From Marsupella aquatica (Eukaryota; Plantae; Marchantiophyta): a DNA stretch of 64,000 nucleotides. Position numbers and translations under genes: made by a program. Below the pieces are notes generated by a model. The model was not told the DNA's origin. It saw nothing but the letters and a program-made list of their open reading frames with translations, and searched no databases. Positions 9,724 through 40,299 of the stretch are shown piece after piece. The DNA lies in the NCBI GenBank assembly GCA_973895155.1, contig OZ316898.1, forward strand, positions 3,224,480-3,288,479, written 5' to 3'. Position 1 is the first letter of the stretch. Each line of letters starts with the position of its first letter.

Positions 9724-11945
9724 TCAGAGAGTCATACGCTCAAAGGACCTCTCGAAAGTGACCGGTGGCATCACAAATTCTTCACCTCCGCCGAAGTTCT
9801 TCCCTACTGCCTTCACTTCGATAGTAGTACGTCCGAAATACATTGAGACCTCAATGTCGGGCCATTCTCCTAATACATTTCTACTAGGATGCTTCACAAC
9901 GAAACTGTCTTCTTTGTAGATGCCTGGCTCTGTTACATATTCCGGATCAGGGTTAGTGGTGGAATACAGCGAGATACGTGTTTCAGTTTGATTACGGAAA
10001 CCTGGAGAGAACCTATGGCTCACAGAGCAATCTACAAGGACGGTCTCGCCTTTTCTGGTGAAGAGTGTGAATGTACCACGACATCGTGTCGCTCCATCAC
10101 CATCTACAAACTTCATATGTAGTGGGTCACCCTGACGGAACAGTCGAGAGGCCGCAATTCCGTAAGTCTTCTTGGAGATACGCGACATTACGAGGTCAGA
10201 TCCAACTCCAAACGCGACTGCTCCACAACAAATCGCGCTTCCCGGGTCCTTGGGGAAAATGATTTTTCCTGCGGCCAACCTCTGTGAGTAGGCCTCCTTA
10301 ATTCGCTTTGTTAGATACGGTGATGCTGCAAATCCGCCCACGACCATTATGGCCTTCAGGTCTGGGATCCATTGGCAGTCGATCAGGTCCAATATCTGAT
10401 TAACTACGGGATCAAATATGCTCAGCATGTCTTCGAGGGTCAAGGCTATGGTGTCATACGACACATCTGCATTCGGCCGTCTACCTTTGGAGGTTTCGTC
10501 TTCCTCCCAGGCCCGCGCCAACTTTACTGACAGCTCCGTCTCATAATCAAAGAGCATATCACCATTAAAATTGCACTTGATGGTGTCCCACCACGACTGC
10601 AATTTTAAGACGCTTTGGGGATGCGCTGCAGCAAACTCCCGATAGCATGATATGCGCTGCGTGAGAAATTTGGAAAAGCCTTCGTCAACATAGGTTCCAC
10701 CGCATAGCCCACCGGAGCTGGGGGCTACTTGTCGAACTTTGTTACTCCATTCTGAACCGACTTTCTGGTGAAGAGCGAGGTCCACAGTTCCACCTCCAGC
10801 GTCCACCACGAGAAATTTGTCTCCATCACTGAGAGGAAAATCCGATATTCGCTGACAGTAAAACGAGGCAGCCTCGGGTTCTAGGACAATAATGGCTGGG
10901 TGTGGGCTAGCATCCATCTCTCGGCAGTTTGGGCCCTGCACCAAGCCAGCAACCTCTGCGCATGTCTTCATTTCTTGTTTGGCCGTCTCGTCCCATATCG
11001 CGGGCACTGTTATGCACCACTGAACGTCTTCCTTGGAGATATGACTTCCGAGATTTTTCTGAAGAACGCTGATAATCAAGTCCGACAACTTCCTCAGATA
11101 GTCGGATATAGCTCTTCGAGCAGTAAGACCTTTCGGAAGGTCGGCTGCAGACGTCTTCCCTGCGGAGTTAATGAACGATTCATGACTGTCGATCAGCATG
11201 TCTAGCTAGCTCATCCAGGTGCATGCACGTTTCCGTCACAAAATTAATTGTTCGGGACCTTCCATATATGTGATAAGAAAAGCAATCAATTCAATGAGCA
11301 TAGTGAAATCAGCTCAAATTAGGAAAGCAATTCCAGGCTTCGAAGAAATTAGCTCCCAAATTTTGAAGGAAAATATATTTCATTTGTATATTATATATGA
11401 GTACATACACGTTACAAGCTAATTTTGGAAACGATTAGACGATCACTGGAGTCTTATTAATCGCAGACGGATGACATCATCAGCAGGGGAATCCAACATT
11501 TCATATAAGACGCACCAGTTCCAGCAAGATGCAACTTAAAACGGGTAATGAAATGGGCTTGTCCCTCAGATACAGCGTGGGCATGCAGGAACTGGACAGG
11601 ATTGGCGTGCAGTAAGTGGCGCGCTGTGTGCCTGTTTCGAGCGCTACATTCTTCCTTTCTCGCATGGGACTTTGTGGCGTGCTGCACGAGAGCCTCGTGC
11701 CCCCATCCTTCTAGAACGAAAGACCCTGAGCTAGAACCTCCTGTACCCGGATTCGAATAGAGTAGGCTCGTCTGAGTTTTACAATAGTTGGTAGCGCCCG
11801 ATTCCTTCAATCCGGGCCACTCAAAGAACAAGTGACATTCCTCTGGCTTAGATGCGAGTGCATACGCAAATCCAGAAAAGGTAGTTCCAAAGTCAAGTCC
11901 TACTACTACGCTAGCGTCGGATATAGTGATCTCGAGACGATTCAT
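9724..11945 (-). CDS. HSPA12-like atypical Hsp70, copy B; exons 11945-11516 and 11159-9724, ~621 aa
   Basis: Same motifs and same phase-1 intron (11515-11160) as copy A; exon 2 has the identical length (1436 nt). Confidence 0.9.
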
Positions 11946-12295
11946 CTCGAGTGTATATATAGATAGAACCACACACAATATCAATCAGCAAAGGGCTCGA
12001 TATTTTAGTCACTGGCTTGTGACCTTCGTCCTATCTCTGTCGTCTCGTTAATTTGCTACTTGGGTCCGGCCTGTGCGTTCAATTCTCAAGATACTCTCCA
12101 AGTCATATATTGAGTTGGAGTGCCCACTACGACTGAGTTGGTGCATAGATATAGTTTCAGTTTCCTGACAGTAAAACACTCAGCCGGAACCTATGCTCGA
12201 ACCTATATGCCTCTTCGAACGGCTAGGCTTGTCTCAAAAATGATTCAATTCGATCTCAATTTTGTCCTTTCTGCTTGGGTGAGCGGAGAAACCTA

Positions 12296-12527
12296 GGAAA
12301 GTGACATAATTATGGAGCTACTCAATATTGGAGCACACGATTCAGAACGACGGTCTGATCGCACTCTGTGTACCACCTGTCCTGGAAACATCCCCGGTGG
12401 ACAAGCTAGCTTGAATTGAAGTGATAGAATTGTAAAGCTACTCAACATAGGAGCACACGATTCAGAAAGACGTCCTGATAGCGCCCTGTGAACTAAACAT
12501 CCTGGACAACATTCCCGACCGGTGGAC
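12296..12527. repeat. Local ~120-bp tandem duplication in the Hsp70-B upstream region
   Basis: The block AAGTGA..GCTACTCAA..GGAGCACACGATTCAGAA..GGTGGAC occurs twice here but once in the copy A and C promoters. Confidence 0.7.
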
Positions 12528-14472
12528 TAGTTGAACCTCTCCAATCCCACTCCCATTCATCAACAATCCGCCAATCTCAGTCTAGCCAGACCGTTATCAT
12601 CAGGGTCAGAATATATATCATTTCGCTTGTCGTCATCTCGATTCCCTGGCCTGGCCGCGAATATGTACATGATGTAATTAACCATCATTGATCGTAGCCA
12701 GCCGCCCCAAAATTCATCAGGGAACGTACAGCTGATCGATATCGATTGATCATTTTGGATATATCAAATCACAAATCTCAATCTCATTTGATTTGGACAG
12801 TAAATGTTGGTTGCAGTTTAGTGTTCATCTGCCCTTAGAACTTCGCACGAAGCGATAACTCCGACCTACAGCTGGTATTAGCCTGAACGCAGTGAAAGAA
12901 TAGCTAGTCTACTTTCGGGTACAGATGTACACTGCTAGCTCGGAGTGAGTTTCAACCCGATTTGACGCTGTACGCCATTTTCACAGGGATTCTTCCTTGC
13001 CCTCAGCGGGTAATCCATCGTGATAAAAAAATCCTATGTCTCAGAGTATCCTTGGTTCGTCAATTTCATCAATTGAGTATCAGAGGGTAATCTGTCTTTA
13101 GCTGTATATGCCCATGCATGCAAATCAGTTGTATAGATAAACCCGATGGTTTTGATCATTTGATTTAATTTGAACAAATGGATGTCCAGAACATCTAGCT
13201 TGTTTGTAACGCAAAACCTGGGCATGGCTGCTCATTCCTACTGGGAAAATTTTAACTTGGGATGCAATGAGAGGAATATAATCCACTTGAATATTAGAAT
13301 CCAAACTCCAAAGGTGACCTCAAACGTCACTCGCCGCCCAAAGTGATGATGAGTTCGTTGATCGGTGGCAAAGAGGCACTGCAAAATCGAATATTAATTT
13401 TGATGAGCTAGGGATTTCTGGATGATTTTTAGTCGGCCGGATGAGCTAGGGATTTCTTGATCAAACCTGTGTACATTACATGTTAGTTAGTTATACCTTT
13501 TCTGAATGGTCCTATTTCCCAATTCAATGATTGAAATGAAGTATTCTAGCTAGGTCTCTTTTGTCTGAAAAATACTTGCTCCTGTTTCCGAGTACGTTTA
13601 CAAAACTAGAGACATGAGATCAGACCTAAATATTGTACTCCCAAGTGATGTGAATCCCTGTTTCTCGAATCTTCCTAATCTGGCATGGGGAAGGTCAATG
13701 TCCGTGTACAGGCGTACTCCTAATGGGTAACCTATTTTCGAGTTGTCGGTCGGTCCTTTTCCCAGATTTGATCTGAAGGTGCCTTCGTACATTTCACATC
13801 ATGTCGGAATCATCCTTTTCTTGCCAAGCGCACTAATTCCGTAGACTACGTACTGAATTGCAGTCAGGAGATTTTCTGTTTGGTAGTTATTACCGTTGTT
13901 GCTGTATACCCTCGATGCATACTGAATGCCACATGCATGTTGAGAACGATCCTTTGGGTGATTGAAAGCGTCTTTGGTACGTAGTACAGTCACGTCTGGC
14001 AGGCAGTGAATTGCCAGAAACCTTGGAGTTGACAACGATGTTTTGAACGAGTCTGATCGTTAATTACGAAGATGGCGAGTCCCAGTATACATGACCACCA
14101 GTTGAGTAGTTCGTCTTTTATGGCTTTCAAGATTACACAAGTCCATATCCAATGTCGTTCATTACGTCTATTGCAACTCTCGAAAGAGTGTGTGAGCCTC
14201 TACCTAAGTACAGGATACTACAAAGGCGTTCAAGCAGACAGGCTACATTTTATCCTCTGCTATCTGAGCGCTTAAGAGTCTAGCTGCGTGACGGCTCTAG
14301 AGGATCGAGCTCAGTCATCATGTTAATAAAATCTCTGTTGATTAAATCGTACGTTGTTAGTGTTCTGCTGCCTTCATTTGAAGTTTAGAATCTAGCTTCA
14401 GACCTCAGAACGTACTTCCTTTGAGAGCAAGAAGCAATTAATTGATAAGCGTACAGGTGAACGGAGTGCAAA

Positions 14473-16368
14473 ATGGACCCCAGCGGAGTTCCTTGGACTC
14501 GTCAAAGACACGAAAGCCCAGGAGAAATCTGCTTTGATGCCATACACGAAGAGCAGTTCATTCTTGACGTCTCATCGGTAATCTTAATCTGGTCGACCCC
14601 CAAGTCGAGTGGTAACTACGATTAATGGAGTATAACTTACTCATCCAGATACTCATGCATCGAACTGGAATACTTGTTCGTTTTAATAAGTTGTTCATAT
14701 GCGTTGACAGCGATATAATATGTTTAGGTGAATTTCCGGAGATCTTTGATCAGGTACATGTATGCTTCATGTTTAGGGGAACACAGCTGATGATTGGAGA
14801 TAGCAGGCATCCAAGATCTGCTGTCTCTAGTTTTGTCGCGGTATTGGATTTCACCTGCTTTTGTTTGGACTTCAAAGGACTAAATTATAATTACTCTTGG
14901 CACTGTTGAAGGATGAAACTTGTTGGGCTGATTGCAGGGTCGGAAGAACAACAAATCTGAGCGTCGTTCCAATTATGATATACGGACAGATCTGGATGTC
15001 GTGCCAAGAGAAGCAACCTTTCATGACATTGTGCAGGGGAGGCCCGACGCGAGTCTGCTCAAAGCCAGTTTCGAAGGTCTTGTAAATGCAAATTTGAAGG
15101 TCAATGCAGACTTGAACGCTATCTTTCAAACACGGGAGTTGGAATTCCAGGAGCAGAAGCAATTGGTTTGTCAAGCACAGCGAGAGAACCAGACGCTCCG
15201 TGAGCTCCTGATCACCGAACGTAACAGTCGCACTACACAGGTCGTGGAGTTCCAGAAAACGATGTGTGTAATCAAAGATGAGATTGCACAGTTACGCCAA
15301 GACATGAACAATGTACCTGCTATTTGTGAGGATAGTATGGCAACCAACATAGAGATGGCAATTGGTCAGCTATTTCGTGATCACCAAGGACTAGATAAAG
15401 ATCTTCGCAAATGTCGCATCCAGCTCGAGTCCGCAACGCACAACGTCAATCTGAAGACCAATGAAAGTGAACAGTTGACGACAAACAATCTGTTACTCGA
15501 AGAAGCTAACAGTAAACTCAAGCTGAAAGTTGAAGAGATTCAGCTAGAGCTTTGTAAGGAAAAGGAAGGTCATCATGGATCCCACGGCGGTGGCTCGCCG
15601 ACGCCCTTGCTTTGCGAGACCATGGCGAAAGAAATGTTCTCTTCAATTGCTACATTCAGCATTTTGCTAACTGAATACAAAGATTCGTCTGGAAGCATCC
15701 CCGCCTACTCTTTGACTGTTGGTAGTGAGCTTTGGAAAAGAGTCCTCATCGCGCAAACCCATCACTGGACATACGTGTTGAAGAATATTATTTGCAATGG
15801 CCTGTTTAAAGACTTTGAGTATGAGACTTTTCTATCGTCCGATTCAAGCGTGTTGTTTCTGGATCAAGAGGAAAGAGTGAGCAAATGTTTGAAGTACTAT
15901 GAAAAAAGCAAAAACGCAGGGTCTTCGGAGAAGGCGCCTGCCTCTAATACACGAGGGGATAGACTTGATTTATTCTTTTGCCACTACTTCAGAAATCAGA
16001 TTCGTCTTTTACCGTCGGAAATTCGTCAGCACAGCATGGCTTTCAGAGATTATGATGAGCTCGTCAGATCTGTCCACAACAAAATACCAAAGTTAGAAAA
16101 CCCTGCTGACCGGCAACCTCCCCTGGTAACTAGCCTTATCATTGCGGCTAAAATGGTATGGGACTTTCACAAGCTCTGTTTGTCATTTGACCCTCCTGCG
16201 ACTATATTCAGAGTATCACCGGGAGATCCCTTTAATGCCGATTACATGGAGAGCATTGACACACCAGACCATAGCACTGTCCCAATAGTTGGCTGGATGG
16301 TTTTCCCTGGATTCCGTCTGCGGAAGTCTGTTATAAAATGTCAAGTCTATCTTTCGCTGAAGACTTGA
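14473..16368 (+). CDS. Coiled-coil protein with GIL1/IRKI-type C-terminal (GrpE-head-like) domain, copy B; exons 14473-14577 and 14938-16368, ~511 aa
   Basis: Long heptad-rich N-terminal half. The C-terminus WDFHKLCLSFDPPATIFRVSPGDPFNADYMES..VGWMVFPGFRLRKSVIKCQVYLS matches the plant GIL1/IRK-interacting protein C-terminal pattern. An ATG-bearing 35-codon exon (MDPSGVPWTRQ...) is conserved in copy C and joins via a phase-0 GT..CAG intron. Confidence 0.8.
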
Positions 16369-17895
16369 TATATATCGATCTTCCAATTTTATCTGTAGTC
16401 GAATACAAAGTACTATTCTGCAAGCTTTCTTGACATCAGTTCTAGTCAGTTACAGAGTATCTCACAGTACGCGCTTCTGTATACAACGACCTTAAAAGTT
16501 AGTCAGTCTTAGTTAGTATCAACTAATTAGACTTGGCAATTCCAAGATAAATTTTGTATTGTCCGCAGTTCCCATATATGCAAAGTACGTTCGCTTTCAC
16601 TGAGTGGGTATACTGTTCGACACCATTTTGTACGTATCAATCTTAAGACTTCCAGAAGTCCATAATAAGCATTCTCGCGTTTTGTTCGATCTCATTCAGC
16701 TTTCTGTATGCTGACTGAATCCTTATTCATGCATCCCGAACAATGATGTATTTCAGCAGTGAGACCATCAACCCCGCATCAACTGCATTACCCCGAGATA
16801 CGCACGCATTCATTCCTAAGCTGCCAACTATTTAGTTAGCAGTTTAGAACTTTACCTCTGTCTATATATTAATTTCCCATATATATCCAGGTTAAAATCG
16901 TTTGTTTGGTCTTCTTCCTTTCATTAGAGATAGTATGTTTCACCAGGTAGAGCAAGGCTGGACGACATGAGCAGCGCAGCAGAACTAGCTCGCCTAACAG
17001 ATTTACCAGCCACCTTGCAACTGCTCCAAGGCCGATGAAGGGGATCGAGAGGACTGATGATTTCAGGAAAGCTAGATCGAAAGCAAGAAAAAGATATATG
17101 CCTGGACCACGTAGCTAAGGCCACAGCCTCCAGATTCAAGGGTAATTGTAACGTGCGAGCAAACAGTAGAATTTTTGCTCGCACGGGCAAGATGTCACCT
17201 TGTATTGGGGCCCAAAAAAGGTCTGGAATATTCCTCGCTAGCATGGAGACCCTGTTCGATCAATAAATATAGACGGTTACCCATGGACGATTCTAGTCCC
17301 GTGAACGCAATAGATCAAAATGACATATCTTCAGGCCAGCGAAATCGCTAGTCTAATGATGCCAACACATTGAGCCACTCATACGAGGTACGGTCTCCAC
17401 GTACAGGCTTCCACATGTGAAAATTCCCACCCGAGGAAGAGTAATAACAAAAAAGTACTTCGCGATTCCCGCGTGAAAAGAATCAACGTGTCATTACTAC
17501 CGAGGAAAGGAGGATTAAGGCCGTTTGGACACTAATTAAGTCACTTGCAAGTGAACGGGACACTTACCGTTCGAACCAGACTCGAATCCAAGGCGTCGAA
17601 CCGTCCACTTAAACAAATCCGCTAGCCCAAAAACCACCAGTCTACCAAATCATTCTCCCGATCACTTCCACCGCGTCCGACTTGATCTCTTTCATTTGGA
17701 ACTGCTATCAGTGTTCCAAGTTCTCAACACTCTCCAGATCTAGTTCAGGTAAGCACGGGTCTATTCTTTGAGCTGTTTTAAGGGAAGAACTCTCCGACAA
17801 GGCATGATATTCATCGTATTCCACCGTGAATAATTTTTCCATTTGTTGAATCCTGTTCTCTTTAATCACTGTTTGGGTTTCGTAAGTGCAGAGAA

Positions 17896-18324
17896 ATGTC
17901 TGGTGTTCCAAGCAATCCTCCTCAGGGGAAATGGCGACTTGAGATCCGTCGTTACAACCCGGCGACAGATGGCCCGCTTGAAGATGACTCTCCTCCGAAG
18001 CAGAAACCCGATGCAGAGACTATGAAGGTCTCCTCAGGCAGCAGTGTCCCAACCGAACTCGGTCAATCTGTTGGATCGTCATCATCATTGAGGAGAACAC
18101 CTACTCCTCCAAAGTTAATTCCAGCAGCAAAGTCTCCACCGAAGCCAAAGGTGGATACCACACAGCGCGAGGTTGTATCGAAGAGGAAGAGGCTCGCAGA
18201 AGAGGATCAGTATTGGATTGACAGGGAGATCTATGACTACTGGACCGAGGAACGCCTCGCCTCTTCGGATTACGATTCTGAGTCAGACACTGACTCCGAT
18301 GCATGGAAGGCGTCCAGCCCCTGA
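17896..18324 (+). CDS. Small disordered ORF inside the MULE (142 aa; Pro/Ser-rich, KRKR basic motif, acidic tail), unknown function
   Basis: ATG-initiated open frame with protein-like low-complexity composition; no recognisable domain. Confidence 0.4.
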   Translation: MSGVPSNPPQGKWRLEIRRYNPATDGPLEDDSPPKQKPDAETMKVSSGSSVPTELGQSVGSSSSLRRTPTPPKLIPAAKSPPKPKVDTTQREVVSKRKRLAEEDQYWIDREIYDYWTEERLASSDYDSESDTDSDAWKASSP

Positions 18325-18947
18325 GGGTAGAGTCAGGTTGTGGATTTACTGAATTTTTTGTAGTTACAAGCGAACCGCATGTCCTCATGTACTTTCAATA
18401 TGTATGAGAAGTAAAGTTTGGGTGGTCCTTTCATTTCTATGTGTTTCTCTGGAATGCCATTTCGCACATAGTACTTTTATTTTGAAGTCACTGTTGGACC
18501 TTTCCCAGACTAGCGATATCGCTAGTATAGAACTGTGTTCATCTTTGATAATCAATTCGATGGAGTATTACCATAACAACTTCAGGGGAAACTTCCCTCC
18601 CTAAACCCTAAACATCCTGTCACATCCTGTCCTAAATTCCGTTGATCAGACTAGCGATCTCGCTAGCCAAAAACTGGCATCATTTTAATGATCAAACCGT
18701 GAACTCTAGAGAAACTTGTCGATAGGTTAACACGTATGAAAGTAGGATGTTTCTGTCAGGATGCAGCAGACTTCCTAAGACTAGAGAGATCGCTAACCGT
18801 AAACAGAAAACTCAAACACCATAAAAGTTACCATTGTGGACCTCGCTAACATTATGATTCACTCGGTGAAAACAAATTGATATTTGTGAAACCACAAACT
18901 CGAGTAATCCATCCCACCACCCTATAATTAGCATCTCCAATAAACGA

Positions 18948-21900
18948 CTAGTCCCCTATCTGTAACGGAATTAAACTCCTCACTTCCCCAACAGTCAGAA
19001 TTGGCTGTTTGACAAGGTCGTCCTTCTCTAGGTTGAGTGAAAACTTGTTTAAATACACCCACAGCAGATGTTTACAAGACATGTATGGTTTCCCTCGTGT
19101 ATGCCTCTTATAAAAGTCTTCACAAGAACACAAAGGGAAACAATAGATTTGCACCCAATATGTGTGCGGAACTTGTGAATCAGTCTCGTGAGTGGCGATC
19201 AAGTATCTCCAACCCCATCCATTTCTGGTAGTTACCTTCTCATTTCCGACAACTCTCATGTATTCTTGTGTAGCGGAAACGATGCGCTTGAGCAACTTTG
19301 GAGTATTGCTGAAACGCTGTCTTGCACCCTTACCATTTCGAGTTTTCAACCGACGGTCCACATTAGTTAGATCAATTCGTTCGGGGAATGAGTTAACATC
19401 AATTCGTAGGTTGACCCGATTGGGGGACGGGAACTCTCCAACTTGATTTGCATCCACATAGGAGAGTCCACTGATCTGGAATCCTAATCCCAGCAGAAAC
19501 TCTATCTCGGGATGGGAGAGGCAAGTCCCACGCTGAACCTTGAGCGACTCGGGTGGGGGGGGTAGTTGAGCTAGAGTTCTGCGTCCTCGGCTCTTGTGAC
19601 ACTTATTATTAGGACAGAAGTACAACAACTGGCGATGTGGAGACGATAATCGCAACCCGTGAATGGCGACTCCAACAATTCCCCCTTGCGCGGACTTACA
19701 TCCAGTCTCCTTGATGAGATTTCTACATTCATCTCTTCCAAAAACGCTTCGGTCAACCGACCCGTTGCAAACAGGTCCAGCACCTCTACCGCTCCGCCTG
19801 AGATGCCAGGTCCCATAAGGAACATCAACCTCTCGGATGGAAGGGATCCTTTGGGGGGCATCCCGATGGTCATCCCCGACATCACACTGAGGTTGAGTCC
19901 CCATCTTCACGGTATCATTGACATTACGACTTGCATCATCACCATCATCATCTGAAATATGGATAACTCCAGCAGAACAACGTCCGACAGGTGTTGCCGA
20001 AGTTGTATTATTTGCTACTTCTGGGTCCGCAGAAGTCTCCGAAACATTGACGAAGCGAAATTCAGGATAGAGATTACGCCTTTTTAGTCCTGAAGGAGAA
20101 GCTGTTGTGCGTGACACCTTGTCATGTCTGTGGGAGTCATTCTCGTGGATTACAGCTGAAGCTTTCCCTTTCCTCTTCGTGGATGTTGTTCGGAGATCGC
20201 CATGTAATGGAACTGTTCTATAGAATTCATACTTAGCTGAAGACTCAAGCAAAAGATTTGTTGCCTTTTCGTAAGCATCCATGGATCCCATAGCATCGGC
20301 GTTCCTATATGCTAATTCAAAAATGGTCGGCCCCTGGCCTCTGTGAACACCTTCACTTTAGGCAGTAAAAGCAGCAATTTGCCCCGCAGCACGATTCTGG
20401 TCCACCTCACATGCTTCAATCAATCCCACTAGTTTCTTCATTTGGCAGGATCTCATGGATGCATGGACTGATTCCGCTCCAGTACAATTTGGCATCAAGG
20501 CTGACTCCATTGCGGTTTGCGTCTGCAACAAAGTAGTCCCCAGTCAGACCTGATATGCTAGCGAGGTCGCTAGCAAAAACAATGACGTCAAAGATAAATG
20601 AAATTGGACACTTACAATGCGGATGAAGTTCCCCCACTGCCTCCACCTCACGACCCACCAAGATAACCATCCTTGGAGAGACTTCAATTTCCCAGCATAG
20701 CAGTTTCCTTCCTTCCACCAACGATGGATTTCGTCAGCAACACGGTAGGCCTGAACATATGTTGGTGCTGTTCTCAGCCTTTCCCACAGTTTATAGTGCT
20801 CTCGATGGCGACCTTCCCGAATACCCTCCAATGTGTGACGACGAAGAGATTGAGCAAAGTGAAAGGCGTCACTGTGCTCCTTCTGTGGGTGACGGACACC
20901 TCCAAAAAAAACATTTCGAATGGCGATCCATCCAGCCTCGGCATTATCGGCAATAAATCCTCCAATGAGTGGGTCATGCACATCATGATCAGAGGCAACT
21001 TCAATCATATATCTCCATGCGGTTTCAAGAGATAAGGACTCCTCCGCACGGAGCTCACAAGTGAAGATGGTACAAAGGGACCTGTAATTATGGTCGTACA
21101 CATGGGCGCTGAAAGTCAGCCACCCAGTGCTTATTCTCCGCATTACATCAGAACTGACCCATGCTCCTTCCAGCTCACCTCCACTCTTCATCTGCCTGAG
21201 AATATCGACACCAGAACCTGGGCCATTTGTACTCATTTTGAAGACATGAGCCCTATCGGTCTTGCTCCCCTGCCCAGGGAAAAGGTACCTCTGAACGTAA
21301 GGAAAATTATTCCGTGCTTGCATCTCACGAAGAGAATCCAACTCACCCTTTTTTGGGTTATCCATTTTCACACTCCGGAATATGGCCTGGAATTTCTCAA
21401 CAGTGGACACAACCTTCATCGATTCCCAAATCTCTCTCTCTTCTTCTTTTGATAGTTCTGAAGAAGACTCTGGATGCAAAAGAGAAACCAGGTTTCCTAT
21501 AGACTTGTTAAGAACACGCCCTGGCGTACACACGGGATTCGCTTTATGAACACCAGAAACTATCTCCTCCGCCTGCTTTTTTGCCAATCGAGATTTCCCC
21601 TTCCAAACAACGTGGTCATGGAAACCCATGTGAACAGCCAATCGAGACATATGTTTCGCAACATTTGACTCAAGAGACGGCTTAGGATAGACGTACAAAA
21701 GCTTAGCCGGACATTCACGGATGCAGAGAGGCCTCTCCTCACAGAATCCGCACACCAACCCTCCTTCCTCCACAAGCTCACCAAGATGAAACGGCTCAGT
21801 AAATTGTCCCTTTCCTCGGAAGGAAGAGTCATTTTTTGAACCGGTGTGCTTCAACTTTCTACAGACCAGATTTTGGCATTCAAGTACACCAGCACATCTG

Positions 21901-22661: not shown

Positions 22662-23336
22662 TACAGTCTACAGCAATCCACAATGTGAGATACTTCGCTC
22701 TCTTCTTTCTCCAAATACATATGAGGAAACGTGCTTGTGTAGGTGTTGGACTCAACGTATTTATTTAATAAATGCCTCTTATTCCCGTTATCTGACCGTT
22801 ATTTTGTCTTATATGACACTATTTGCGGAATGATAAAGCTAGCGATCTCGCTAGCTCAATGAACCAAGTAAAATTGTTCAAATCCTTACAAAACACCCTT
22901 CAGGAGTTCATGTATTTAGTGGTCATTTTTTGGCTAGCGATGTCGCTAGCAAAAATATTTCCTCATAAGAGACCATTGTGACCGTTTATATTCGTTGGAA
23001 TTGGTCAACGGGTACCTATATGTCAACGGTACGGTACAGTACTGGACACCTGTCTCATTGTCATTAGATACTTTTCTTTCAGTCGTGAGTTCGGTGGTTT
23101 GTATTTCCGGAAGTACATGTATACCTGACGGTGTCTGAAAAATGATTGCGAGAAGAGTCGTACAGAATATCTGTATCTCTTTTCACGACCGGGCGCAGCA
23201 TTCAGGTGAAAGCAATAGAAGAGGGTATGATTCTGTCTTTGATTGGAAGATCGATTCTCGGGGTTTTTTATGTTCGCAAAGCGTGTCGCCCTCGACCTTG
23301 ACCTGTTGATACCCTTATCACTTCACGGACCCCCTG

Positions 23337-26300
23337 ATGGAGCCATTGTCTTCACCCGAGAGCTTGTCATCAATAGGATCGTTCAAGTTAGTCGAGTCAA
23401 GCCGAAGGGAGACCAGGTCTACAGTGAACAAGAAGGCGCTCCAGGCGGGATTGAAAACACCGCGGAGGCCCAAGATGGTGAACCAAGTAGATGTTGTGAA
23501 TCCAACGTTTCAACCTGGAGCTTCAGAACCTTATTCTGTTGTCATCAATCGCCATCTTTTCCCTTTTGGAAATGACGAATTTGGATTCTCGCTCGCTCCT
23601 TCGAGGATTCCCCTTTGTAGAATGCGAAACATGCAGATCGTTCGGTCCTTGCAAACTAACTTGACTGCGATCGAGACACTCAAGAATGAATTCCGAACAC
23701 AAGGATACATCGAAGATGCGCCTCGATTTTACGTCCAAATGACCGGCGAAGATGGCCTTGTCCAGATGTGCGAGGATGTGATTCGGGGGTCGTGGGATGA
23801 CATGTGGATTCTTCAGAATGAAGAATTCGAGAGGGAATGTGATTCTCACGAAGCTTTCAAAATTTTGAAAGACAAAATGTTCTGTGTTTTCGATGGAAAT
23901 CATCGTCTGTACTCATGGATGCAGCTTGCGGACGAGAATCCCCATGATGTCAAATATCATCCTCGAGTTGTTTGCCGAATTTTCAAGGGTGACAAGAACT
24001 CATTCGTGCAGATTGAGTCGGCAATGCATGCGCTGAATAGGTTTGTTTCTTTTCCTTCAAGCTGTGAATTGTATATAAAATTCTTTCATTTCCTCTTGTT
24101 AGTGATCTCGCTGACCTGTTTCTTTTGTTCAGGTTGACTCAATGTCACGTTGAGAATTCTTGGGTCCTTGAAGCAGAGAGAGTCCACAAGGTTCTCAGTA
24201 ATGACCTTTCTGTATACAAAGATATCATCGATGCAGACAACTACAAACTTTTCCAGTAGAAGATGGCAAATATCAGGAAACCGGCTTGGTATTCGAAGAA
24301 CATGACACTCGATGCGTGCACGTACATTCTGTCTGCTGCTAATATTGCAGCGCAGACGGAAGATTTGAAGAAGAAGTTTCAGTTGAAAGAAGCGCAAGGA
24401 GAACCTCTTTCAAAAGCTGCGCAAGACATGGCAGTCAAAGACATGATGAAGGAGCAACTGGCAGATTGGAATGTGAAGGTGCCAAAGATTGGACCTCTCC
24501 TGAATCCTGAGTTTGGTGACTTTTTCCAGATGTGTGTTGAGATGCACAACTACTGCGAACATGAGAGGAAGGAGGCCCAACGAACAGACGATAAAGGAAG
24601 GGGTAATGTGTCATGTGGTCTCGATCGTGCGAGGCTATTTACGGGTGTCTCATCGTTGACTCCCCAGCTCAGATGTGTACTCCTCGAGGCACAATGCAGA
24701 CCTGAGCTTTGCAAGAAGTACTTCCACCCTGGTCAATTCTCGGACAGCGAAACAAAACTTTGGCTTCACCGATGGGCTGTATGGGAGCAGGTTGAGTCAA
24801 TTTGTTCTTTGCTCATGTCTGAGATTATTTCAGAGTTGATCCCAACTGTTCCAGATGCAAGGATCCTTACTTCGTCTGAGAAGACAAAGCCATTGCTGAT
24901 CCTTGACATAGAGGAGGACTTTGAAGATTTCCAAACGAGAGTGAAATCTCGTTTTTGCAAACAGATTTGGCCACCAAAGTCGGGTGAGAAGATTGACATC
25001 TCACTTTTTCGGAGGAGGGCGAAGAGATATACGTATCGTTTTTTTGTGGATAGAGAAGTTGCTGACAAAACATATTGGTGGTCCTATCCTGCTTGCTTCT
25101 CGCCTTGGATAGCAGGAGTGAAAGAGGATCCAACCTCTGTTAAATATGGAGAGTACTCGATGTACCCATGTGAGGGAGTGGAGGCTCCAAGGAAGATGAG
25201 TGAGTGGGAAGTCCTTCACTGTCCATGGTATTTAGAATCAGACAAATGGGCAGTGACATTTGACACAGCAGAGAAGGCAGCATTTCATATGATAAATCGA
25301 GGCTTGATACCAGAGTCGTACATTACAGAGTCCAAATTAGCTCCTGCAGAAGCCGAGGCTGGCGGATGTGATGCAATGGAGAAAGCTGTTCTTGGTGTAG
25401 CTGCCATTGTGGACCGGAGTAGATCGAGGAGACCTCGGAAAGTGCCGGTGAAGGACACGTCCAAAGATGGATCAGTCTTGTCTGGGAAGCAAAGTAAGTC
25501 TTTTTCTCCTCTTTTTTTCATACCTCATTTGGAGTAATTTTGTCTCAGTCACCTGTCTGACATTAACATGTTTTTCAGAGAAGAGAAAGGCTGCAGCCTC
25601 TGGCAGTTTGAAGAGTGGGGCGGATGATGGAGAAGAACCCAAGTCTCCTGATGTTGAGGTCACAACAAAATCTGCTGTGGACCTGGGTTCAATCAAGCGT
25701 TTAAAGAGGAAGCGCAATGTCCAAATTCTCTCCGACTCGGATGAGGAGGAAGCATGCGTCGCGCAAGGAGTAGCACGAATGTGTGGTCTTAAGAAGGACG
25801 GTGAGAGGCATTTCTTGGCGAAGAGCAATCTCACGGAAACTGCAAACTCAATTAGCCAGAGGAAAGTAAGACCTCCCTGGATGGGCGATGCGGATCAGTG
25901 GTTGTCTAGAATGAGCAAATCGAGCGAACACCCAAACGCCGTGATGATCAACGGAAAAAATTACGCTGGAATTGGTGCTCACTTGGGTTTCATATTCCTT
26001 CCCACGGGTCATCGAACAAGCGTCACAGACCGGGAGGTCCCGAAGTGGAATGTTTGGAGTGAGAAATTACCATATTATTTCTTTGGAGTCATGCGTCCGA
26101 TGCTTGCCGATGATGGTTATGTCGCAGTTCTTCACAGCTCTGACTATAACCATATGAGGCAAATTTTTTCTGTAGTCGAACAGAAGAACAAATTTAAACA
26201 TGTCCGGCAGTATTCGGTTTTGCTTTCATCTCCTTTGTATCAGGCAGATATGGACATCGAGGTAAGATATCCTCCATATTTTTTGTGCAATTTTTGCTAG

Positions 26301-27302
26301 CGAGCTCGCTAACCAAAAGTGCCCATATCTTACATATTATCGTTTTCAATTCAGGTGGTTACTCTCATTATGGATGTCTTCTGCAAGGTGGAATTCTCGG
26401 CAAAAGTCCCGAAACATACAGGATATGTTCCAATGACTTCCTCGGAGGATGCCCGCCATAAATCAATGTTGAGTGTTTGCCACCCAAAAACTGATCCCAG
26501 TCCCAGAGCGGCTTTCGCAGGTTCCAATAGATTGTCAGTTGGGTTCATGCAAGCCGTAATGGAGATCCTTACTTTGCCAAAGGACATTGTCATTGACTGG
26601 ACTGTTGGAGATGGAAGTGCTTTTGCCGCTGGGGAATACGCTGGGAGATTTGTTGTGGGTGTTGAAGATCGAGACATTCTTCATCTGTGTGCACAAAGAA
26701 CTTTGGCAAATGTGTTGGATAGACATGCCCAGAAGTTGAAAGGGGCCGCAGACCCGAAGAACGATGATCCCAAAGATGAAGGGTCTGATGATGAGTTCAC
26801 CATCCCAAGAGATGATCAGGGAGGACCTTCAGGCGAGAAGGATGAATTCGACCTGGAGTAAAGCACTTGGCCTTTGATGTAGAACTCCCTATTTGGTGTT
26901 TTTCTTTTGTTTGTAGAATTTTCGGATGTTTAGTATTGATCCGATTCTGGTGATTTCTTCAGTGATAGGCGTTCGGATTGGTTTTCGGAGGAGAGATTCC
27001 GTCTTCGGAAAGAAATCGAGGATCATTTTCTTGTGACCCCTGACAAGGGATTTGCGCTTCCATGCTATGCTGAAAAGACTGCAAAGGAGGTTGATGAAGC
27101 GCCCGTCGTTTTGACTTGGGAGGGGAAAGGTCTGCGGTCAATGAGGGGTGTTCGGAAAGCCCTTTACTGCCCTCAGTTCATAGATGAGGAGGCTGGGACT
27201 GTAGCACAGTATGTTGACGGTTCGGCTGAGGAGACTGATACGGAGTCCAGTAGCGATCCTAGTAATTCCTCAGATGATTTGGAATCAGAGGATTCTCAAT
27301 GA
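23337..27302 (+). pseudogene. MULE cargo gene: ParB/Srx-like N-terminal domain plus C-terminal beta-class N4/N6 DNA-methyltransferase-like domain; exons 23337-24040, 24133-25493, 25579-26261, 26355-26857, 26963-27302 (~1196 codons), one in-frame TAG at 24257-24259
   Basis: Four GT-AG introns (phases 2,1,0,2) stitch five open segments into one frame. VFDGNHRL (D at 23892) is ParB/Srx/DGQHR-like. FMQAVMEILTLPKDIVIDWTVGDGSAFAAGEYAGRFVVGVE follows the N6_N4_Mtase motif X-I-II pattern. MRPMLADDGYVAV follows the 'RvLkpdG' pattern. The motif IV position reads FLPTG instead of DPPY. Confidence 0.7.
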
Positions 27303-29114: not shown

Positions 29115-29149
<35 letters not shown>

Positions 29150-30053: not shown

Positions 30054-30360
30054 TTATAATGCACGAATTAGGCCCAGTTGAGCATTTGCTACAACTCAAT
30101 GGTTTTGGAGCTTAGACCTAATCCTAAAAAAGCAAGTGCTAGTACAGTGTCTAGAAGGGTAGAGAGATTGCTAACATTAATGTGCGATCCTAATTAACGT
30201 TATTTCCCGTGCCATGGCTACACCAGCTGTTACATTCCGAACTTATTGAACTGCCGATTCAAAACGATAACAAAATCGCTCAAACACCTAAGTCTCTAAT
30301 AATCAGTCCTGCCTTTCAGATCCTTGAGGGCGAGACAATCGACATCTCTGAATTTCGAAT

Positions 30361-32481
30361 TCAGAGAATCATGCGCTCGAAGGACCTCTCAAAAGTGACT
30401 GGTGGCATCACAAATTCTTCACCTTTGCCGAAGTTCTTCCCTACTGCCTTCACTTCGATGGTAGTACGTCCGAAATACATTGCGATCTTAATTGTGGGTG
30501 ATTCTCCTAATACATCTTTACTGGGATGCTTCACAATGAAACTGCCTTCTTTGTGTGTGCCTGGCTCTGTCACATATTCTGGATCGGTGTTAGACGTTGA
30601 ATACAGCGAGATATGTGTCTCAGTTTGATTATGGGAACAGGGCAAGAACCTATGGCTCACACAGCAATCTACAAGGACGGTTTCCCCTTTTCTGGTGAAG
30701 ACTTGGAATGTATCATGACAACATGCCTCTCCGTCGTCATCTACAAACATCATCTCTAGTGGGTCACCATGACGAAACAGTCGACAGGCGGCAATTCCGT
30801 AAGTCTTTTTGGAGATACGCGACATTACGAGGTCAGATCCAACTCCAAACGCGACTGCTCCACAACAAATTGCACTTCCCGGCTCCTTAGGAAAAATAAT
30901 TCTTCCGGGTGCCAACCTCTGTGAGTAGACCGCTTGAATTCGTTTTATTAAATATGGCGATGCTGCAAATCCTCCCACCACCATCATGGCCTTCAGGTCC
31001 GGGATCCATTGGGAGTTGATCAGGTCCAAAATTTGATTCACTACGGGATCAAATATACTCAGCATATCTTTGAGGGTCAAGGCTATGGTGTCATACGACA
31101 CATCTGCCTTCGGCAGTCCACTTTTGGAGGCGTCCTCTTCCTCCCATGCCCGAGCCAACTTTGCTGGTAGCTCCAATTCATAATCAAACAGCATCTCACC
31201 ATCAAAATTGCACTTGGTGGTTTCCCACCACGACTGCAATTTGAAGACGCTCTGTGGTTGTGCTGCAGCAAATTTCCCAAAGCTCGTTATGCGCTGGGAG
31301 AGAAATTTCAGAAAACCTTCGTCCACGTAGGTTCCACCGCAAAGCCCACCGGAGCTAGGGGCTACTTCTCGAACTTTGTTACTCCATTCTGAACCAACTT
31401 TCTGGTGCAGAGCGAGGTCCACAGTTCCACCTCCAGCGTCCACCACGAGAAATTTGTCTCCATCCGTGAGAGGAAAATTAGATTTTCGTTGACAGTAAAA
31501 GGAGGCAGCCTCGGGTTCTAGGACAATAATGGCTGGGTGAGGGCTAGCATCCACGTCTTTGCAGTGTGGGCCTTGCACCAAACCAGCAACCTCGGCGCAT
31601 GTCTTCATTTCTTGTTTCGCTTCCTCGTTCCATATCGCGGGCACTGTTATGCACCACTGAACGTCTTCCTTCGAGATATGACTTCCAAGATTTTTCTGGA
31701 GAACGCAGATAATCAACTCCGACAACTTACTCAGATAGTCGGATATAGCTCTTCGCGCAGTGAGTCCTTCCGGAAAGTCGGCTGCAGACGTTTTTCCTGC
31801 AGAAAGAACGATTCACGACTGTCGATGAGCATGTCCAGCTATATCGATCATGCAGGTACATCCATATATATTTCGATTATAAAATTGTTCGTGACCTACC
31901 ATCCTAAATTTGAAAGAAACGATTCAGTGGTATATACTAGTTTCAAGGTAAGTTGATTTGGAAACATTAATTACAAACGGGATGACAAAGTAACTGGAGT
32001 CTGTCTTGTTCATCGCACATTGATCTTGGGGAAACTAAGATTCGATGTAGGACGTACCAGTTCCAGCAAGATGCAGCTTGAAGCGCGTAACGAAATGTTT
32101 ATATCCCTCTGATGGAGTACTGGCCGGGGAACTGTGGACGATTGTCTTGCCACAATTCCTGTTTGTCGCGCTGCATTCTTTAGGAGTTCTCTCATGGGAT
32201 TGTGTGGCTTGAGCATGCTGCACAAGAGCCTCGTGCCCCCATCCTTCTAAGACGATAGAGCCTGAGCTCGAACCTCCTGCACCCGTATTTGAATACAGTA
32301 GGCTCGTCTGAGTTTTACAGTAATTGCTGGCGCCCGCTTCTTTCAGTCCAGGCCACTCAAAGAACAACTGACATTCTTCTGGCTTGGATGCGAGAGCGTA
32401 TGCAAACCCGGAAAACGTAGTTCCAAAGTCGAGTCCTACTACTACGGTAGCGTTGGATCTAGTGATCTTGAGACGATTCAT
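30361..32481 (-). CDS. HSPA12-like atypical Hsp70, copy C; exons 32481-32058 and 31796-30361, ~619 aa
   Basis: Same motifs, same phase-1 intron (32057-31797), exon 2 again 1436 nt. Confidence 0.9.
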
Positions 32482-34655
32482 CTTGAATTTATAGAGCTAC
32501 ACTCGAAATATCAACCAGCAGAGGGCTCGATTGTTTGGTCACTAGCTTGTCACCTTCGTTCTATGTCTGTCGATCGTCCGTTTGTTACTTAGGTGCTGTG
32601 CGTGCAATTCTCAAGATACTCCATAAGTCACGTATTGAATTGGAGTGTTCAACTTGGTCCATAGATATAGCTTCCCGATGGTAAATCCACCTACTTAGAA
32701 ACTATAAGTCTCTACACGCGAACGACTACCCTTGTCCCAAACACTGTTCCAACTCGATCTCATGTTTTGTCCTGTCTTTTTTCTCTTAAGTTAGTTGGGG
32801 AAATCTAGGAAACATAGAGCCACTGATCATGGGAGCACACGATTCAGAATGACCGTCTGATAGCACCCTGAGTCCCACACGTATGATTGTCCTGGGCAAC
32901 ATCCCCGGTGGACTAATGAACCTCCAATCCCATTCATCAACAATAGGGCACTCTACTTCTAGCCAGACCGTTATCATCAGGCGAGTTGTCAAGGTCAGAA
33001 TATCCTTTTCGATTCACTTGTCGTCATCTCGATTCCCTAACAGCGAAAATCTACTTTGGATCCGCACCATGATTGATTGATCGTTAGCGGCACCGAATTT
33101 GAGCAGGGACGTACAGCTGATGTCGATAGATCAGTTTGGATCTATCAAATCACAAATCTCAATCACATTCGATTTGGACAGTAATTCTTGGGTGCGCCAC
33201 GATAGTCCATCTGGCCTTTTCTCGGGATCAAGAACTTGGCATGGTACGAAAACGATCACTCCGACCTACAGCTAGTATTGGTCTATACGCAGTGAAAGAA
33301 TAGTCTATTTTATGATTAGGGTCCACTCCTAGGAGCGAATTTCACGCCTGTTTTGACGCTGTACGGTATTTCCAGAGTGATTCTTCCTCAGACGGGCTGT
33401 CTCTCAGCCGGTAATCCATCGTTGTAAATTTCATTCCTATCTTAGGGTAATAATAGTTGGACAATTTCATGGATTTTGGATCACAGGGTAACCTGTCGTA
33501 GTATGTAGATGCCCGCATCATTTGATTTTGAACAGAATGGAGGTCCAGAACAACTTGTCTGTAACGCAAAAACCTTGAAGCTGGGGAAATTTGAAGTTGT
33601 GATGCAATACGAACAGGAATACACTTGAATCTAAGGATCCAAACTCCAAAGTTGTCCTAAAACCTCATTGATCGGTGCCAGACGTGCACTGTAAATCGGG
33701 TATTTAGTGGTGCTGGATGAGCCAGGGAGTTATCTATCAAACCTCTGTACATGTTAACCATGTTCGTTAATTATGCCTTTTCTCAATGACTGGTATTATC
33801 CCCCATTTCAATGATTTAAATGGACAATTTCTAGCGAGGTCTCTTTTGTCTGAATAAATACTTGCTCCTTTTTCCGAGTTGAAGTACTGTACACATGACT
33901 TCGGCCTTGTATCTTGTACTCCCAAGTGATGTGAGTCCTTGTTTCTCGTATCTTCCAAATCCGGGAGGAATCAATTTCTCTTGTACAACCGCACCGCAGT
34001 TCTAATGAGTACCCTGTTTTCGAGTTGTCGATTCTATTCCCAGATTCGATCTGAAGGCGCTTTTGTACATTTCACATCATGTCGAAATCATCATTCCTTG
34101 CAAAGCGTACTCATTCCGTGAACTTACAGAACTGTAGTAACGAAAATTTAGATTTGGCGTGTTTACGGCCTTTGTATCCAGACCAATGCCAAATGCAACT
34201 TGGCCAGCGTTGCGTGATTGAAGCGTCGTTTCTAGTACAGTCCTGTCTAGCTAGGCAGTGAAATTCTAGAACCCTTCGAGTGGATAACGATGTTTGGATG
34301 TCTGACGATGTGTAGGTTTCAAGAAGACACAGGCGAGGCTTACTAAGTATACGTATACATGACTAACAGGTGAGTAGTTCGTCTTTCAAGGCCTTCAACG
34401 TTCTACAGTCCATATATATCCACTGTTGAATTGTGAATTACGTCTAGCTACTGCAACTCTCCAAAGAATCTTGTGAACCTCTACGTATTTCCTAGAGCGC
34501 TTAAGACTGCGTGAGATCTCTATAGTCTCTCATTCTTCAGGTAACTGAGATTTCCGGTGATTGAAACTCTGGCGGAATCGTACGTTGTGTGTCTTATGAT
34601 GCCTTAATAAATTTGGAGTTTAGAATCTAGTTCCTGTGAGAGCAAGAAGCGCAAA

Positions 34656-36516
34656 ATGGACGAGAGCGGTATTACTTTCACTCGTCAAACACGAGAGACT
34701 GCAGGAGATATATGCTTTGATGCCATACAAGAGGAGCAGCTCATTCTAGTCGACGCTCCATCGGTAATTATCTTATTTGGTTGAGTGATTATTCGATTAC
34801 GAGAATGTACTTTACTCATCGAACTGCAAAGATTAGTTCCTTCAATAAATTGCTTCAGGCGTCGACAAAGATATAATAGGTTGAGGTCAATTTCCGGAGA
34901 TCATTGATCAGGTACGTTTCATGTTTAAGGGAAACAAAGCTGACGATGGCAGATAGCAGGCATCCCATATTCGACGTCTCTAGTTTGTTGCAATACTGGA
35001 CCTGTTTTGCTTTGGACTTCAAAGGACTGAATGATCCGTAGACTGACTAAATGTGGTTGGAGGATCCTGTCGTTTGTTCGGCTGATTGCAGAGTCTCAAG
35101 GACAACGAATCCGAGAGTCTTTCCAACGGTGCACGGACAGATCTGGATGCCGTACCAAGAGAAGCAACCTTTCATGCAACTGCACAGGGTAGGCTCGACG
35201 CGAATATGCTCAAAGCCAGTTTCGAAGGTCTTTTAAATGCAAATTTGAAGGTCAATGAAGACTTGAACGCGATCTTTCAAAAACGGGAGTTTGAGTTCCA
35301 GGAGCAGAAGCAACTGGTTTTTCAATCAAGGCAAGAGAACCAGAAGCTCCGTGAACTCCTGATCACCGAACATCATTGTCGCACTACGCAGGTCGTGGAG
35401 TTCCAGAAAACGATGTGTGTAATCAAAGATGAGATTGCACAGGTACGCCAAGACGTGAACAATGTACCTGCTATTTTCGAGGATAGTTTGGTAACCACCA
35501 TAGAGACGGCGATTGGTCAGCTATTTCGTGATCAATTACGACTGGATAAAGATCTTCGCAAGTGTCGCATCCAGCTCGAGTCCGCTACGAACGACGTCAA
35601 TCGTAAGACCAGTGAAAGTGAAGAGTTGATGAAATACATTACGTTGCTCGAAGAAACTAACAGTAAATTAGAGCAGAGAGCTGAAAAGATTCAACAAGAG
35701 CTTTGCAAGGAGAAGGAAGGTCATCACGGATCCTATATCGATGGCTCGCCGACGCCCTCTGTTTGGGAGTCCATGGCCAAAGAGACGTTTTCTTCAATTG
35801 CTGTATTCAGTGGAGTGCTATCCAAATACCAAGATTCGAACGGGGACAACCCCGCCCACTCTGGGATTGTTGGTACTGGGATTTTGAGAAGTGTACGCAT
35901 CGCGCGAGACCATCACTGGACATATTTGTTGAAGTATGTCATTTGCAACGCCCTGTTTAAAGACTTTGAGTATGAGACTTTTCTATGGTCCGATTCCAGA
36001 GTGCTGTTTCTGGATCAAGAGGAAAGAGTCAGTAAATGTTTGGAATACTATAATAAAAGCATAAACGAAGGGTCTTCGAAGAAGGCCCCTGCCTGTACTG
36101 CACCAGGCGATAGATTTGAATTCTTATTTAGCCACTACTTCATAAATCTCATTCCTCTTTTCTCGAGATTTTTACCGCCGGAATTTCACGAGCTAAGCAG
36201 GGCATTCAGAACTTATGATGAATTCATCGGGATTGCTTCCAACACAACAAAGTCAGATATCCCTGCTGACCAGCGGCCTCTCCTGGTTAGCCTTATTTTC
36301 GCGGCTAAAAAGGTGTGGGACTTTCACAAGCTCTGTTTGTCATTTGTCCCTCCTGCGACTATATTCGGAGTGTCACCCGGGGATCCCTTCAATGCCGATT
36401 ACATGGAGAGCGTTGACACACCAGACCAAAACACTGTCCCAACAGTCGGCTTTATGGTGTATCCTGGATTCCGGCTGCGGAAGTCAATCATAAAATGTCA
36501 AGTATATTTACGTTGA
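34656..36516 (+). CDS. Coiled-coil protein with GIL1/IRKI-type (GrpE-head-like) C-terminal domain, copy C; exons 34656-34763 and 35092-36516, ~510 aa
   Basis: Paralog of 14473-16368. Exon 1 (MDESGITFTRQTRETAGDICFDAIQEEQLILVDAPS) differs from copy B by an in-frame 3-nt indel; splice sites are the same. Confidence 0.8.
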
Positions 36517-40090: not shown

Positions 40091-40299
40091 GGTTTAGTAT
40101 ATGTTATTAGGGTTTAATTAGCCATCCAAAATGCATGGTAACACATATAAAGACAGTTAGTGGCACTCACATATTAGATTTGAAATAAATTTAGAGACCT
40201 AACAAGCCTTCTTTTGTTGTGAGTCTCATCATTGAATTGATGTACAACTTAAAGGCTTGATAATCTGTAATAAATATGTTCGGGATTGACACAAAGAAA

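Follow-up and report, generated by a model that had tools for sequence, protein, structure and literature searches.

The 64,000-nucleotide stretch of the liverwort Marsupella aquatica analysed here (hereafter the window; assembly GCA_973895155.1, contig OZ316898.1, positions 3,224,480 to 3,288,479 of the forward strand) contains two head-to-head gene pairs, each composed of an atypical Hsp70 gene of the HSPA12-like type and a coiled-coil gene with a GIL1/IRKI-C domain (PF24994), all of which are intact. The best-supported explanation for these pairs is a conserved, divergently arranged liverwort module, in which an HSPA12-like ATPase is combined with a coiled-coil regulator that carries a GrpE-type head. 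Two lines of evidence point in this direction: in structure models the PF24994 domain of the partner and the helix preceding it match the head of GrpE at the fold level, and the same gene pair recurs in a second liverwort species, Calypogeia fissa (GCA_965154635.1). That the partner acts on the nucleotide cycle of the neighbouring ATPase is possible, although we hold this with somewhat less than even confidence.

The genes and intervals concerned are the following, with positions counted from the first letter of the window.

9693-16677: duplication unit A (Hsp70-like A, spacer and partner A), identified by self-BLASTN against 30334-36855 at 67-87% identity.
9724-11159, minus strand: Hsp70-like A exon 2, stop included, coding for most of the nucleotide-binding domain and a C-terminal beta-rich part.
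11160-11515, minus strand: Hsp70-like A intron.
11516-11945, minus strand: Hsp70-like A exon 1, with the ATG at 11945 and the phosphate-1 DFGTT motif, from the translation of the open reading frame (ORF).
11946-14472: divergent intergenic spacer A, the presumed site of both promoters.
14473-14577, plus strand: partner A (GIL1/IRKI-type) exon 1, 35 codons; ATG and donor (TCG followed by gtaatc) read directly.
14938-16368, plus strand: partner A exon 2, 476 codons and stop; acceptor ttgcag followed by GGT; PF24994 at 43 bits.
16114-16356, plus strand: GrpE-like part of partner A, predicted to hold the last helix (residues 393-415) and the six-stranded beta domain (422-473).
30334-36855: duplication unit B, identified by self-BLASTN.
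30361-31796, minus strand: Hsp70-like B exon 2, with an approximate 5' end placed by homology to A; PF00012 at 22.7 bits.
32058-32481, minus strand: Hsp70-like B exon 1, with an approximate 3' end (ORF 32035-32481); N-terminal motifs as in A.
32482-34655: divergent intergenic spacer B, from the alignment to spacer A.
34656-34763, plus strand: partner B exon 1, 36 codons, read directly.
35092-36516, plus strand: partner B exon 2, 474 codons and stop; PF24994 at 49 bits; 70% identical to A.
1394-3553, minus strand: third Hsp70-like copy (copy 0), with exon 2 from 1394 to ~2829 and exon 1 at ~3136-3553; intact, without a partner.

The start codons proposed in an initial annotation of the window proved right on direct reading, both for the Hsp70-like genes (11945 and 32481, minus strand) and for the partners (14473 and 34656, plus strand). 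The splice sites of Hsp70-like A were also read directly (acceptor ...cag followed by GG at 11161-11160; donor G followed by gtgcgt at 11515-11514), and joining them gives the junction LHLAG.GKTSAAD, which matches the C. fissa protein P0006; exon 2 as a whole is 74% identical to this protein. The corresponding exon of copy B was recovered by TBLASTN at 31809-30364 with no stops and with 82.6% identity to A. Single exons or full-length C. fissa proteins served as queries in all searches with the window genes. The five sequencing runs that hold this stretch present it as DNA-like contigs running over spacer and introns, with no spliced joints at the predicted introns.

Judged by its sequence, the Hsp70-like protein is an HSPA12-like ATPase of ~620 residues with a nucleotide-binding domain of the Hsp70/actin fold, in which the phosphate-1, phosphate-2, catalytic glutamate and adenosine motifs are intact; the corresponding positions (D18-F-G-T-T, E233, D259-x-G-G-G-T and G417-G418) are invariant or nearly so among 92 relatives. 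Its similarity to Hsp70 is confined to the nucleotide-binding part: the large exons of copies A and B match PF00012 at 24.4 and 22.7 bits, respectively (cut-off 20.6; profile positions 113-356 in copy A), the protein aligns to DnaK residues 131-379 (BLASTP E=1e-6) with DnaK beyond 379 left unaligned, and weak NCBIfam matches to DnaK and HscA fall in the same part. A canonical Hsp70 substrate-binding domain is not recognisable, the Pfam match ending at profile position 356 of 599. At E<=1e-3 there are 912 relatives of the Hsp70-like gene, which form a large, lineage-expanded family in bryophytes, lycophytes, ferns and a charophyte; no seed plant was found among the best 120 of them. The HSPA12-like label comes solely from source records, in which fern and moss relatives are called “heat shock 70 kDa protein 12A(-like)”. 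By its content the window appears to be nuclear DNA, and the closest relatives of its genes are those of C. fissa.

DUF641 proteins (GIL1, IRKI, COST1 and their relatives) occur across land plants and have roles in gravitropism, receptor-kinase signalling, autophagy, drought response and the shape of the endoplasmic reticulum. The partner, as far as sequence comparison can place it, is a ~510-residue member of a divergent, liverwort-only branch of this GIL1/IRKI/COST1 family. Both window partners match PF24994 (GIL1_IRKI_C) well above the cut-off of 27 bits, and the partner aligns end to end with P0005, a canonical protein with DUF641 and PF24994; neither window partner gives a Pfam match to DUF641 itself (PF04859), which is present in 55 of 101 profile relatives. 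Among 1.84 billion representatives a profile search identified 438 partner relatives; leaving aside a small group from liverworts, the nearest are fern, lycophyte and gymnosperm proteins of the GIL1 type, and a tree places the window partners in a separate, liverwort-only GIL clade (support 100/100). A metagenome scan for partner relatives found none. In the AlphaFold2 model of partner A exon 2 (predicted local distance difference test, pLDDT, of 81.5) two long helices (38-125 and 132-209) are followed by a helical bundle (223-415) and by six strands (422-473). The long helical hairpin would probably serve for dimerisation; for the DUF641 protein COST1, gel filtration is reported to show a dimer (PMC13189119).

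When the full-length model was used for fold searches, coiled coils dominated the results and GrpEL1 appeared only at rank 6 (E=0.38); for this reason the last 137 residues were folded alone. The resulting AlphaFold2 model has a pLDDT of 86, and of at least 95 in the beta domain. When it was compared with the PDB by Foldseek (350,542 chains), ranks 1-10 and beyond were all occupied by GrpE or GrpEL1 structures (E 4.5e-3 to 2e-2, probability 0.85-0.98) from E. coli, human, Thermus, Geobacillus and Mycobacterium, and the next family followed at E=1 and a probability of 0.02. VIA-align, which is independent of Foldseek, likewise put GrpE at ranks 1-3 among 48,161 representative chains (Z-scores of 6.5, 5.8 and 5.7), with 77 residues superposed at 4.5 A between 116-195 of 1dkg_B and 56-136 of the model; when it was used to re-score the Foldseek matches the top six were again all GrpE (Z 5.0-6.6). 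Sequence identity is 9-17%. With scores that are themselves modest, the weight of this match between a predicted model and known structures lies in the exclusivity of GrpE and in the agreement of the two aligners.

A profile-profile comparison led to the same domain. It was made with a diverse set of 13 GrpE sequences (E. coli plus twelve plasmid-borne genes), the plasmid-borne genes being used because a contig scan for GrpE gave only relatives of 86-99% identity, unfit for a profile. Aligned to this set by hhalign, the C-terminal profile of the partner family reached a probability of 61%, P=8.1e-5 and a score of 33.5, compared with 10.0 for a reversed alignment, a maximum of 15.8 for 60 column shuffles and 14.2 for an unrelated Hsp70 profile; with canonical GIL rows alone P was 7.4e-5. 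Partner residues 89-128 are aligned to GrpE residues 145-186, which is the register of the structural alignment and also that of the GrpE motifs that the initial annotation had aligned by eye. A hidden Markov model (HMM) of the 13 GrpEs, run with filters off, matches the C-terminal domain of ~30 family members at HMM positions 144-185, and also matches, collinearly, the coiled coil of some of them. The GrpE-like fold that had been suspected at the outset is therefore seen by Foldseek, VIA-align and the profile-profile comparison alike. At the level of the modelled fold, PF24994 with its preceding helix is a GrpE-type head; it is probably a remote homologue of GrpE, and it is a property of the whole GIL1/IRKI/COST1 family and not of the window genes only. 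In the literature we found no paper linking GrpE to DUF641, GIL1, IRKI or COST1.

Other searches gave different neighbours. Comparison of the partner with PDB sequences by phmmer returned only a coiled-coil match to COP1, and hmmsearch of the family profile against the PDB returned coiled coils only. In a protein atlas the partner C-terminus (15955-16365) has a weak feature neighbour (0.82) in a chordate cluster, that of the “mitochondria-eating protein” (MIEAP, PF16026); a GrpE-like head may also be present in this animal family.

The initial annotation described the pair as duplicated as a unit with its genes intact, and this is borne out by the self-BLASTN alignment of A and B, the open frames and the divergence of the copies. 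The A and B copies show the same synonymous divergence (dS), 0.30, in the Hsp70 and in the partner, which indicates that the two genes were copied in one event. With ratios of non-synonymous to synonymous divergence (dN/dS) of 0.30 (Hsp70) and 0.55 (partner), both genes are under purifying selection and both copies have been kept by it. Along the partner this ratio is uneven, ~0.25 in the C-terminal domain and near 0.9 in parts of the helical bundle. No terminal inverted repeats were found around the duplicated unit, so that it is not transposon cargo. Copy 0, missed by the initial annotation, sits in a partial unit (1069-4692) with only ~1.1 kb of the spacer and no partner gene; compared with A it shows a dS of 0.18 and a dN/dS of 0.34, and it split from A after the A/B split. 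The DNA shared with this unit ends at 4692 and is followed by a cytochrome P450 fragment. Between copy 0 and copy A there is a cytochrome P450 C-terminal exon (6359-6592, minus strand) with the heme-binding motif (PF00067, E=1e-14).

The spacer itself had been put forward as a conserved 2.2-2.5 kb element. Spacers A and B are 75% identical in aligned columns, compared with 74% for the partner intron and a similar neutral expectation at a dS of 0.3, and no non-coding block common to the window spacers and those of C. fissa was detected. Since this identity is at the intron or neutral level, the similarity of the spacers reflects shared ancestry and not constraint, and the spacer argument is wrong, the spacer being uninformative on regulation.

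Outside the window, the four closest Hsp70-like genes of C. fissa are each directly preceded by a GIL-type gene on the opposite strand, as listed here.

C. fissa L003: head-to-head pair, spacer 6.7 kb.
C. fissa L004: head-to-head pair, spacer 2.8 kb, with a second GIL copy downstream.
C. fissa L005: head-to-head pair, spacer 2 kb, with the proximal GIL gene uncalled in the annotation.
C. fissa L006: head-to-head pair, spacer 1.8 kb, with more tandem GIL copies, including P0001 at 15 kb.

The head-to-head orientation is thus found in all six proximal pairs, those of the window included. The paired Hsp70-like genes fall into a single clade (support 98/100) that is deeply divided into two subclades, between which dS is saturated and Hsp70 identity is ~50-55%, and the proximal partners split into the same two subclades inside the liverwort-only GIL clade. 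All 11 members of this GIL clade with a known context lie in such Hsp70-like clusters. Loci L003 and L004 provide a further case of co-duplication, with a dS of 0.065 for the Hsp70 and 0.071 for the partner. The adjacency is therefore not confined to a recent tandem duplication, as the pair is also kept in C. fissa, at four loci that belong to two old subclades. The GIL-type genes nearest P0008 and P0009 (L005 7064-8041 and L006 7276-8465, both on the minus strand) are absent from the C. fissa annotation; the uncalled copy at L006 aligns in two pieces, suggesting a frameshift or an intron.

The association is not universal among the relatives. At the C. fissa Hsp70-like loci L011 (more distant) and L106 there is no GIL gene within 10 kb. 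A more distant cluster, L105 (CBCUJL010000041.1), comprises HSPA12-like genes from outside the paired clade in head-to-head arrangement (5703-7995, minus strand; 10001-12238, plus strand) and, 4.5 kb downstream, a third type of GIL1_IRKI_C gene (16780-18456, plus strand) that is 25-30% identical to all others; the association of Hsp70-like and GIL genes may therefore predate the paired clade. At L104 (CBCUJL010000049.1; 1-1041 and 10001-11539) a truncated Hsp70-like gene of the paired clade, P0023, lacks approximately residues 335-449; an NB-ARC gene is located 9 kb upstream of it, and GIL genes are absent up to 10 kb away.

Taken as a working model, the liverwort-specific module would consist of two genes transcribed divergently from a common intergenic region of 2-7 kb. 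The partner, as a coiled-coil dimer, would use its GrpE-like head to dock on the neighbouring ATPase at the nucleotide cleft and in this way control the exchange of ADP and ATP or otherwise tune the nucleotide cycle, while the fast-evolving helical bundle could make the duplicated pairs differ from one another in specificity or location.

Several observations weigh against this model. On the side of the fold, the structural scores are modest, with no Foldseek E-value <=1e-3 and all Z-scores below 8; the Pfam GrpE model (PF01025) has no match at E<=10 on the C-terminal 137 residues of the window partner, and weakly matches only 6 of 101 family members (best E 0.008) and 0 of 10 C-terminal-only fragments, so that the six full-protein matches may come from the coiled coil. 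The hhalign comparison was not significant against the single E. coli GrpE, nor against 81 enterobacterial GrpEs (effective number of sequences, Neff, 1.2), though in the latter the register was already correct. In addition, a helical bundle of ~190 residues, absent from GrpE, separates the coiled coil and the head. On the side of the adjacency, copy 0 is intact and under purifying selection although it has no adjoining partner, and the moss (L007) and lycophyte (L008) relatives examined have no GIL gene within 10 kb. The window partner is closest to C. fissa P0001 (dS 0.48), which is found 15 kb away from a member of the other Hsp70-like subclade, and the partner beside the closest C. fissa Hsp70 relative is an older paralogue (dS ~1.05), which indicates that the pairing has been reshuffled or homogenised inside the clusters. 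Finally, the adjacency is inherited through duplication, and the pairs are not independent observations.

With these points in mind, two other explanations of the adjacency deserve consideration. The first retains a functional link but not that of an exchange factor and its client: the two genes could be co-regulated members of a stress or defence pathway, with the partner acting as coiled-coil adaptor or scaffold, or as regulator of another nucleoside triphosphatase (NTPase), and with the GrpE-like head being used to dock on nucleotide-binding domains in general. In this family, biochemical data are confined to a GTPase and do not involve an Hsp70, the C-terminal domain of COST1 being located near the GTPase domain of RHD3 and COST1 stimulating RHD3 activity (PMC13189119); accordingly, a family member can regulate an NTPase and its target need not be an Hsp70. 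This explanation would also suit the absence of seed plants, which are rich in GIL1/IRKI genes, from the best 120 relatives of the Hsp70-like gene, and a pairing that is not strictly 1:1 (extra GIL copies, the lone copy 0, and P0001 and P0002 far from any Hsp70-like gene). The NB-ARC gene near the L104 copy would fit it as well, and a defence role is hinted at only by such features of the neighbourhood; PADLOC returned no match. Against it stand, in addition to the PADLOC result, the head-to-head orientation kept in six of six proximal pairs and the specificity of the head, for which GrpE, in its Hsp70-binding domain, is the only matching family. We regard this explanation as rather unlikely. 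Given the known partner RHD3 and the lack of seed plants among those 120 relatives, the earlier generalisation that GIL1/IRKI proteins are Hsp70 cofactors goes too far; what stands of the initial interpretation is the GrpE-like fold and an adjacency older than the tandem duplication, without the conserved spacer.

The second explanation is a historical accident, in which ancestral GIL-like and HSPA12-like neighbours were copied by tandem, segmental and whole-genome duplication and kept together by slow rearrangement, with no functional coupling. All pairs trace to common ancestry and hence effectively to one origin, the spacer is without constraint, the two species are separated by a dS of only ~0.5, L003/L004 and L005/L006 are near-identical duplicates (dS ~0.07), and both copy 0 and the truncated P0023 lack a partner. 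Nevertheless, the pair survives across a subclade split old enough for dS to be saturated, the more distant L105 cluster has its GIL-type gene close by, and purifying selection acts on both genes in every copy. An accident would moreover require a coincidence, namely that the neighbour of an Hsp70-type ATPase bears the only fold that is known to serve as the exchange head of an Hsp70, and we consider it likewise rather unlikely. Least of all do we favour a convergent resemblance or a prediction artefact, in which a small six-stranded beta domain after a helix merely looks like GrpE and PF24994 has an unrelated function: scores in this range (Z 5-6.6, Foldseek E near 1e-2) can, with Z below 8, reflect a common arrangement, sequence identity is low, Pfam GrpE does not match the window protein and no GrpE cluster is found among the protein atlas neighbours of its C-terminus, but two independent aligners rank only GrpE at the top, the profile-profile match (P=8e-5) is in the same register and far above its shuffled controls, and the domain order (coiled coil, helices, beta head) is collinear with GrpE, which together make this option improbable.

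Returning to the module of ATPase and GrpE-headed regulator, its implications reach beyond liverworts. To our knowledge, bacteria, a few archaea, mitochondria and plastids are the only places where GrpE-type factors have so far been described, and we know of no cofactor of HSPA12-type proteins. What is new here is the proposal of a GrpE-type exchange module in a cytosolic, plant-specific setting: if true, a cytosolic, plant-wide GrpE derivative would extend GrpE-type domains beyond bacteria, a few archaea and organelles, and the genomically coupled partner, if it is a true cofactor, would be the first dedicated one for HSPA12-type proteins. A GrpE-type head at the DUF641 C-terminus leads to the testable hypothesis that the family regulates how a partner ATPase or GTPase goes through its nucleotide cycle, which fits the case of COST1 and RHD3, and specificity can be addressed with the cognate and non-cognate combinations that nature provides in the liverwort pairs. 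A more far-reaching extension would be that the whole plant-specific DUF641/GIL1/IRKI/COST1 family descends from GrpE and consists of cytosolic coiled-coil regulators whose GrpE-type head docks on nucleotide-binding domains and so controls their nucleotide cycle, the liverwort pairs preserving the original Hsp70-directed role and the head having been redeployed in seed plants to other NTPases such as RHD3; we think this unlikely as it stands.

The remainder of the window contains features of other kinds. Between the two units (18948-26861) ORFs of 447, 705, 266, 424, 277 and 180 amino acids on both strands gave no Pfam match. Downstream of unit B, two inverted repeats of 590 bp (37005-37592 and 42663-43235) are 91% identical and enclose ~5 kb, within which a family of 284-586 bp repeats is located (40298-42172); this arrangement could represent a transposon whose terminal inverted repeats are long. 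Two single-exon genes were identified, one for a BAHD-type acyltransferase (50852-52519, minus strand; PF02458, E=1e-81) and one for a GT47 exostosin-type glycosyltransferase (57648-59306, plus strand; PF03016, E=1e-59). A tandem array of at least 5 copies of a 63-bp unit (81-89% identity) is present at 55911-56346, inside a 251-amino-acid ORF without clear family (55730-56485, minus strand).

Among known systems, the closest structural comparison is with the Hsp70 nucleotide-exchange system of bacteria and organelles, GrpE or GrpEL1 with DnaK or mortalin (PDB 1DKG, 9BLS, 3A6M, 4ANI and 8GB3); in GrpE a long helix is followed by further helices and by a small six-stranded C-terminal beta domain. 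The modelled beta domain of the partner and its preceding helix superpose on this head (Z 5.7-6.6), the profile alignment runs over the G-x-x-F-[DN] and G-[FY]-x-[LV] motifs, and the partner gene adjoins the gene of an Hsp70-type ATPase, as grpE adjoins dnaK in many bacteria. Unlike GrpE, the partner has ~510 residues instead of ~200, is not a member of the Pfam GrpE family, has a helical hairpin and an inserted bundle of ~190 residues, and is nuclear-encoded with no evident transit peptide. The ATPase next to it is not a DnaK orthologue either, as it is HSPA12-like and has no canonical substrate-binding domain; its likeness to the atypical Hsp70s of the HSPA12A/B type would consist in a weak Hsp70 similarity limited to the nucleotide-binding domain, together with intact ATPase motifs.

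Within their own family, the window partners resemble GIL1, IRKI and COST1 in carrying PF24994 and in aligning over the full length with a canonical member, and differ from them in forming a liverwort clade of their own, in falling below the DUF641 Pfam model and in being clustered with HSPA12-like genes. COST1 itself has as its known partner the GTPase RHD3 and not an Hsp70 (PMC13189119). With the cytosolic exchange factors BAG, HspBP1/Fes1 and Hsp110 the partner would share the proposed role, that is, nucleotide exchange on a non-organellar Hsp70-type ATPase, carried out with an unrelated fold.

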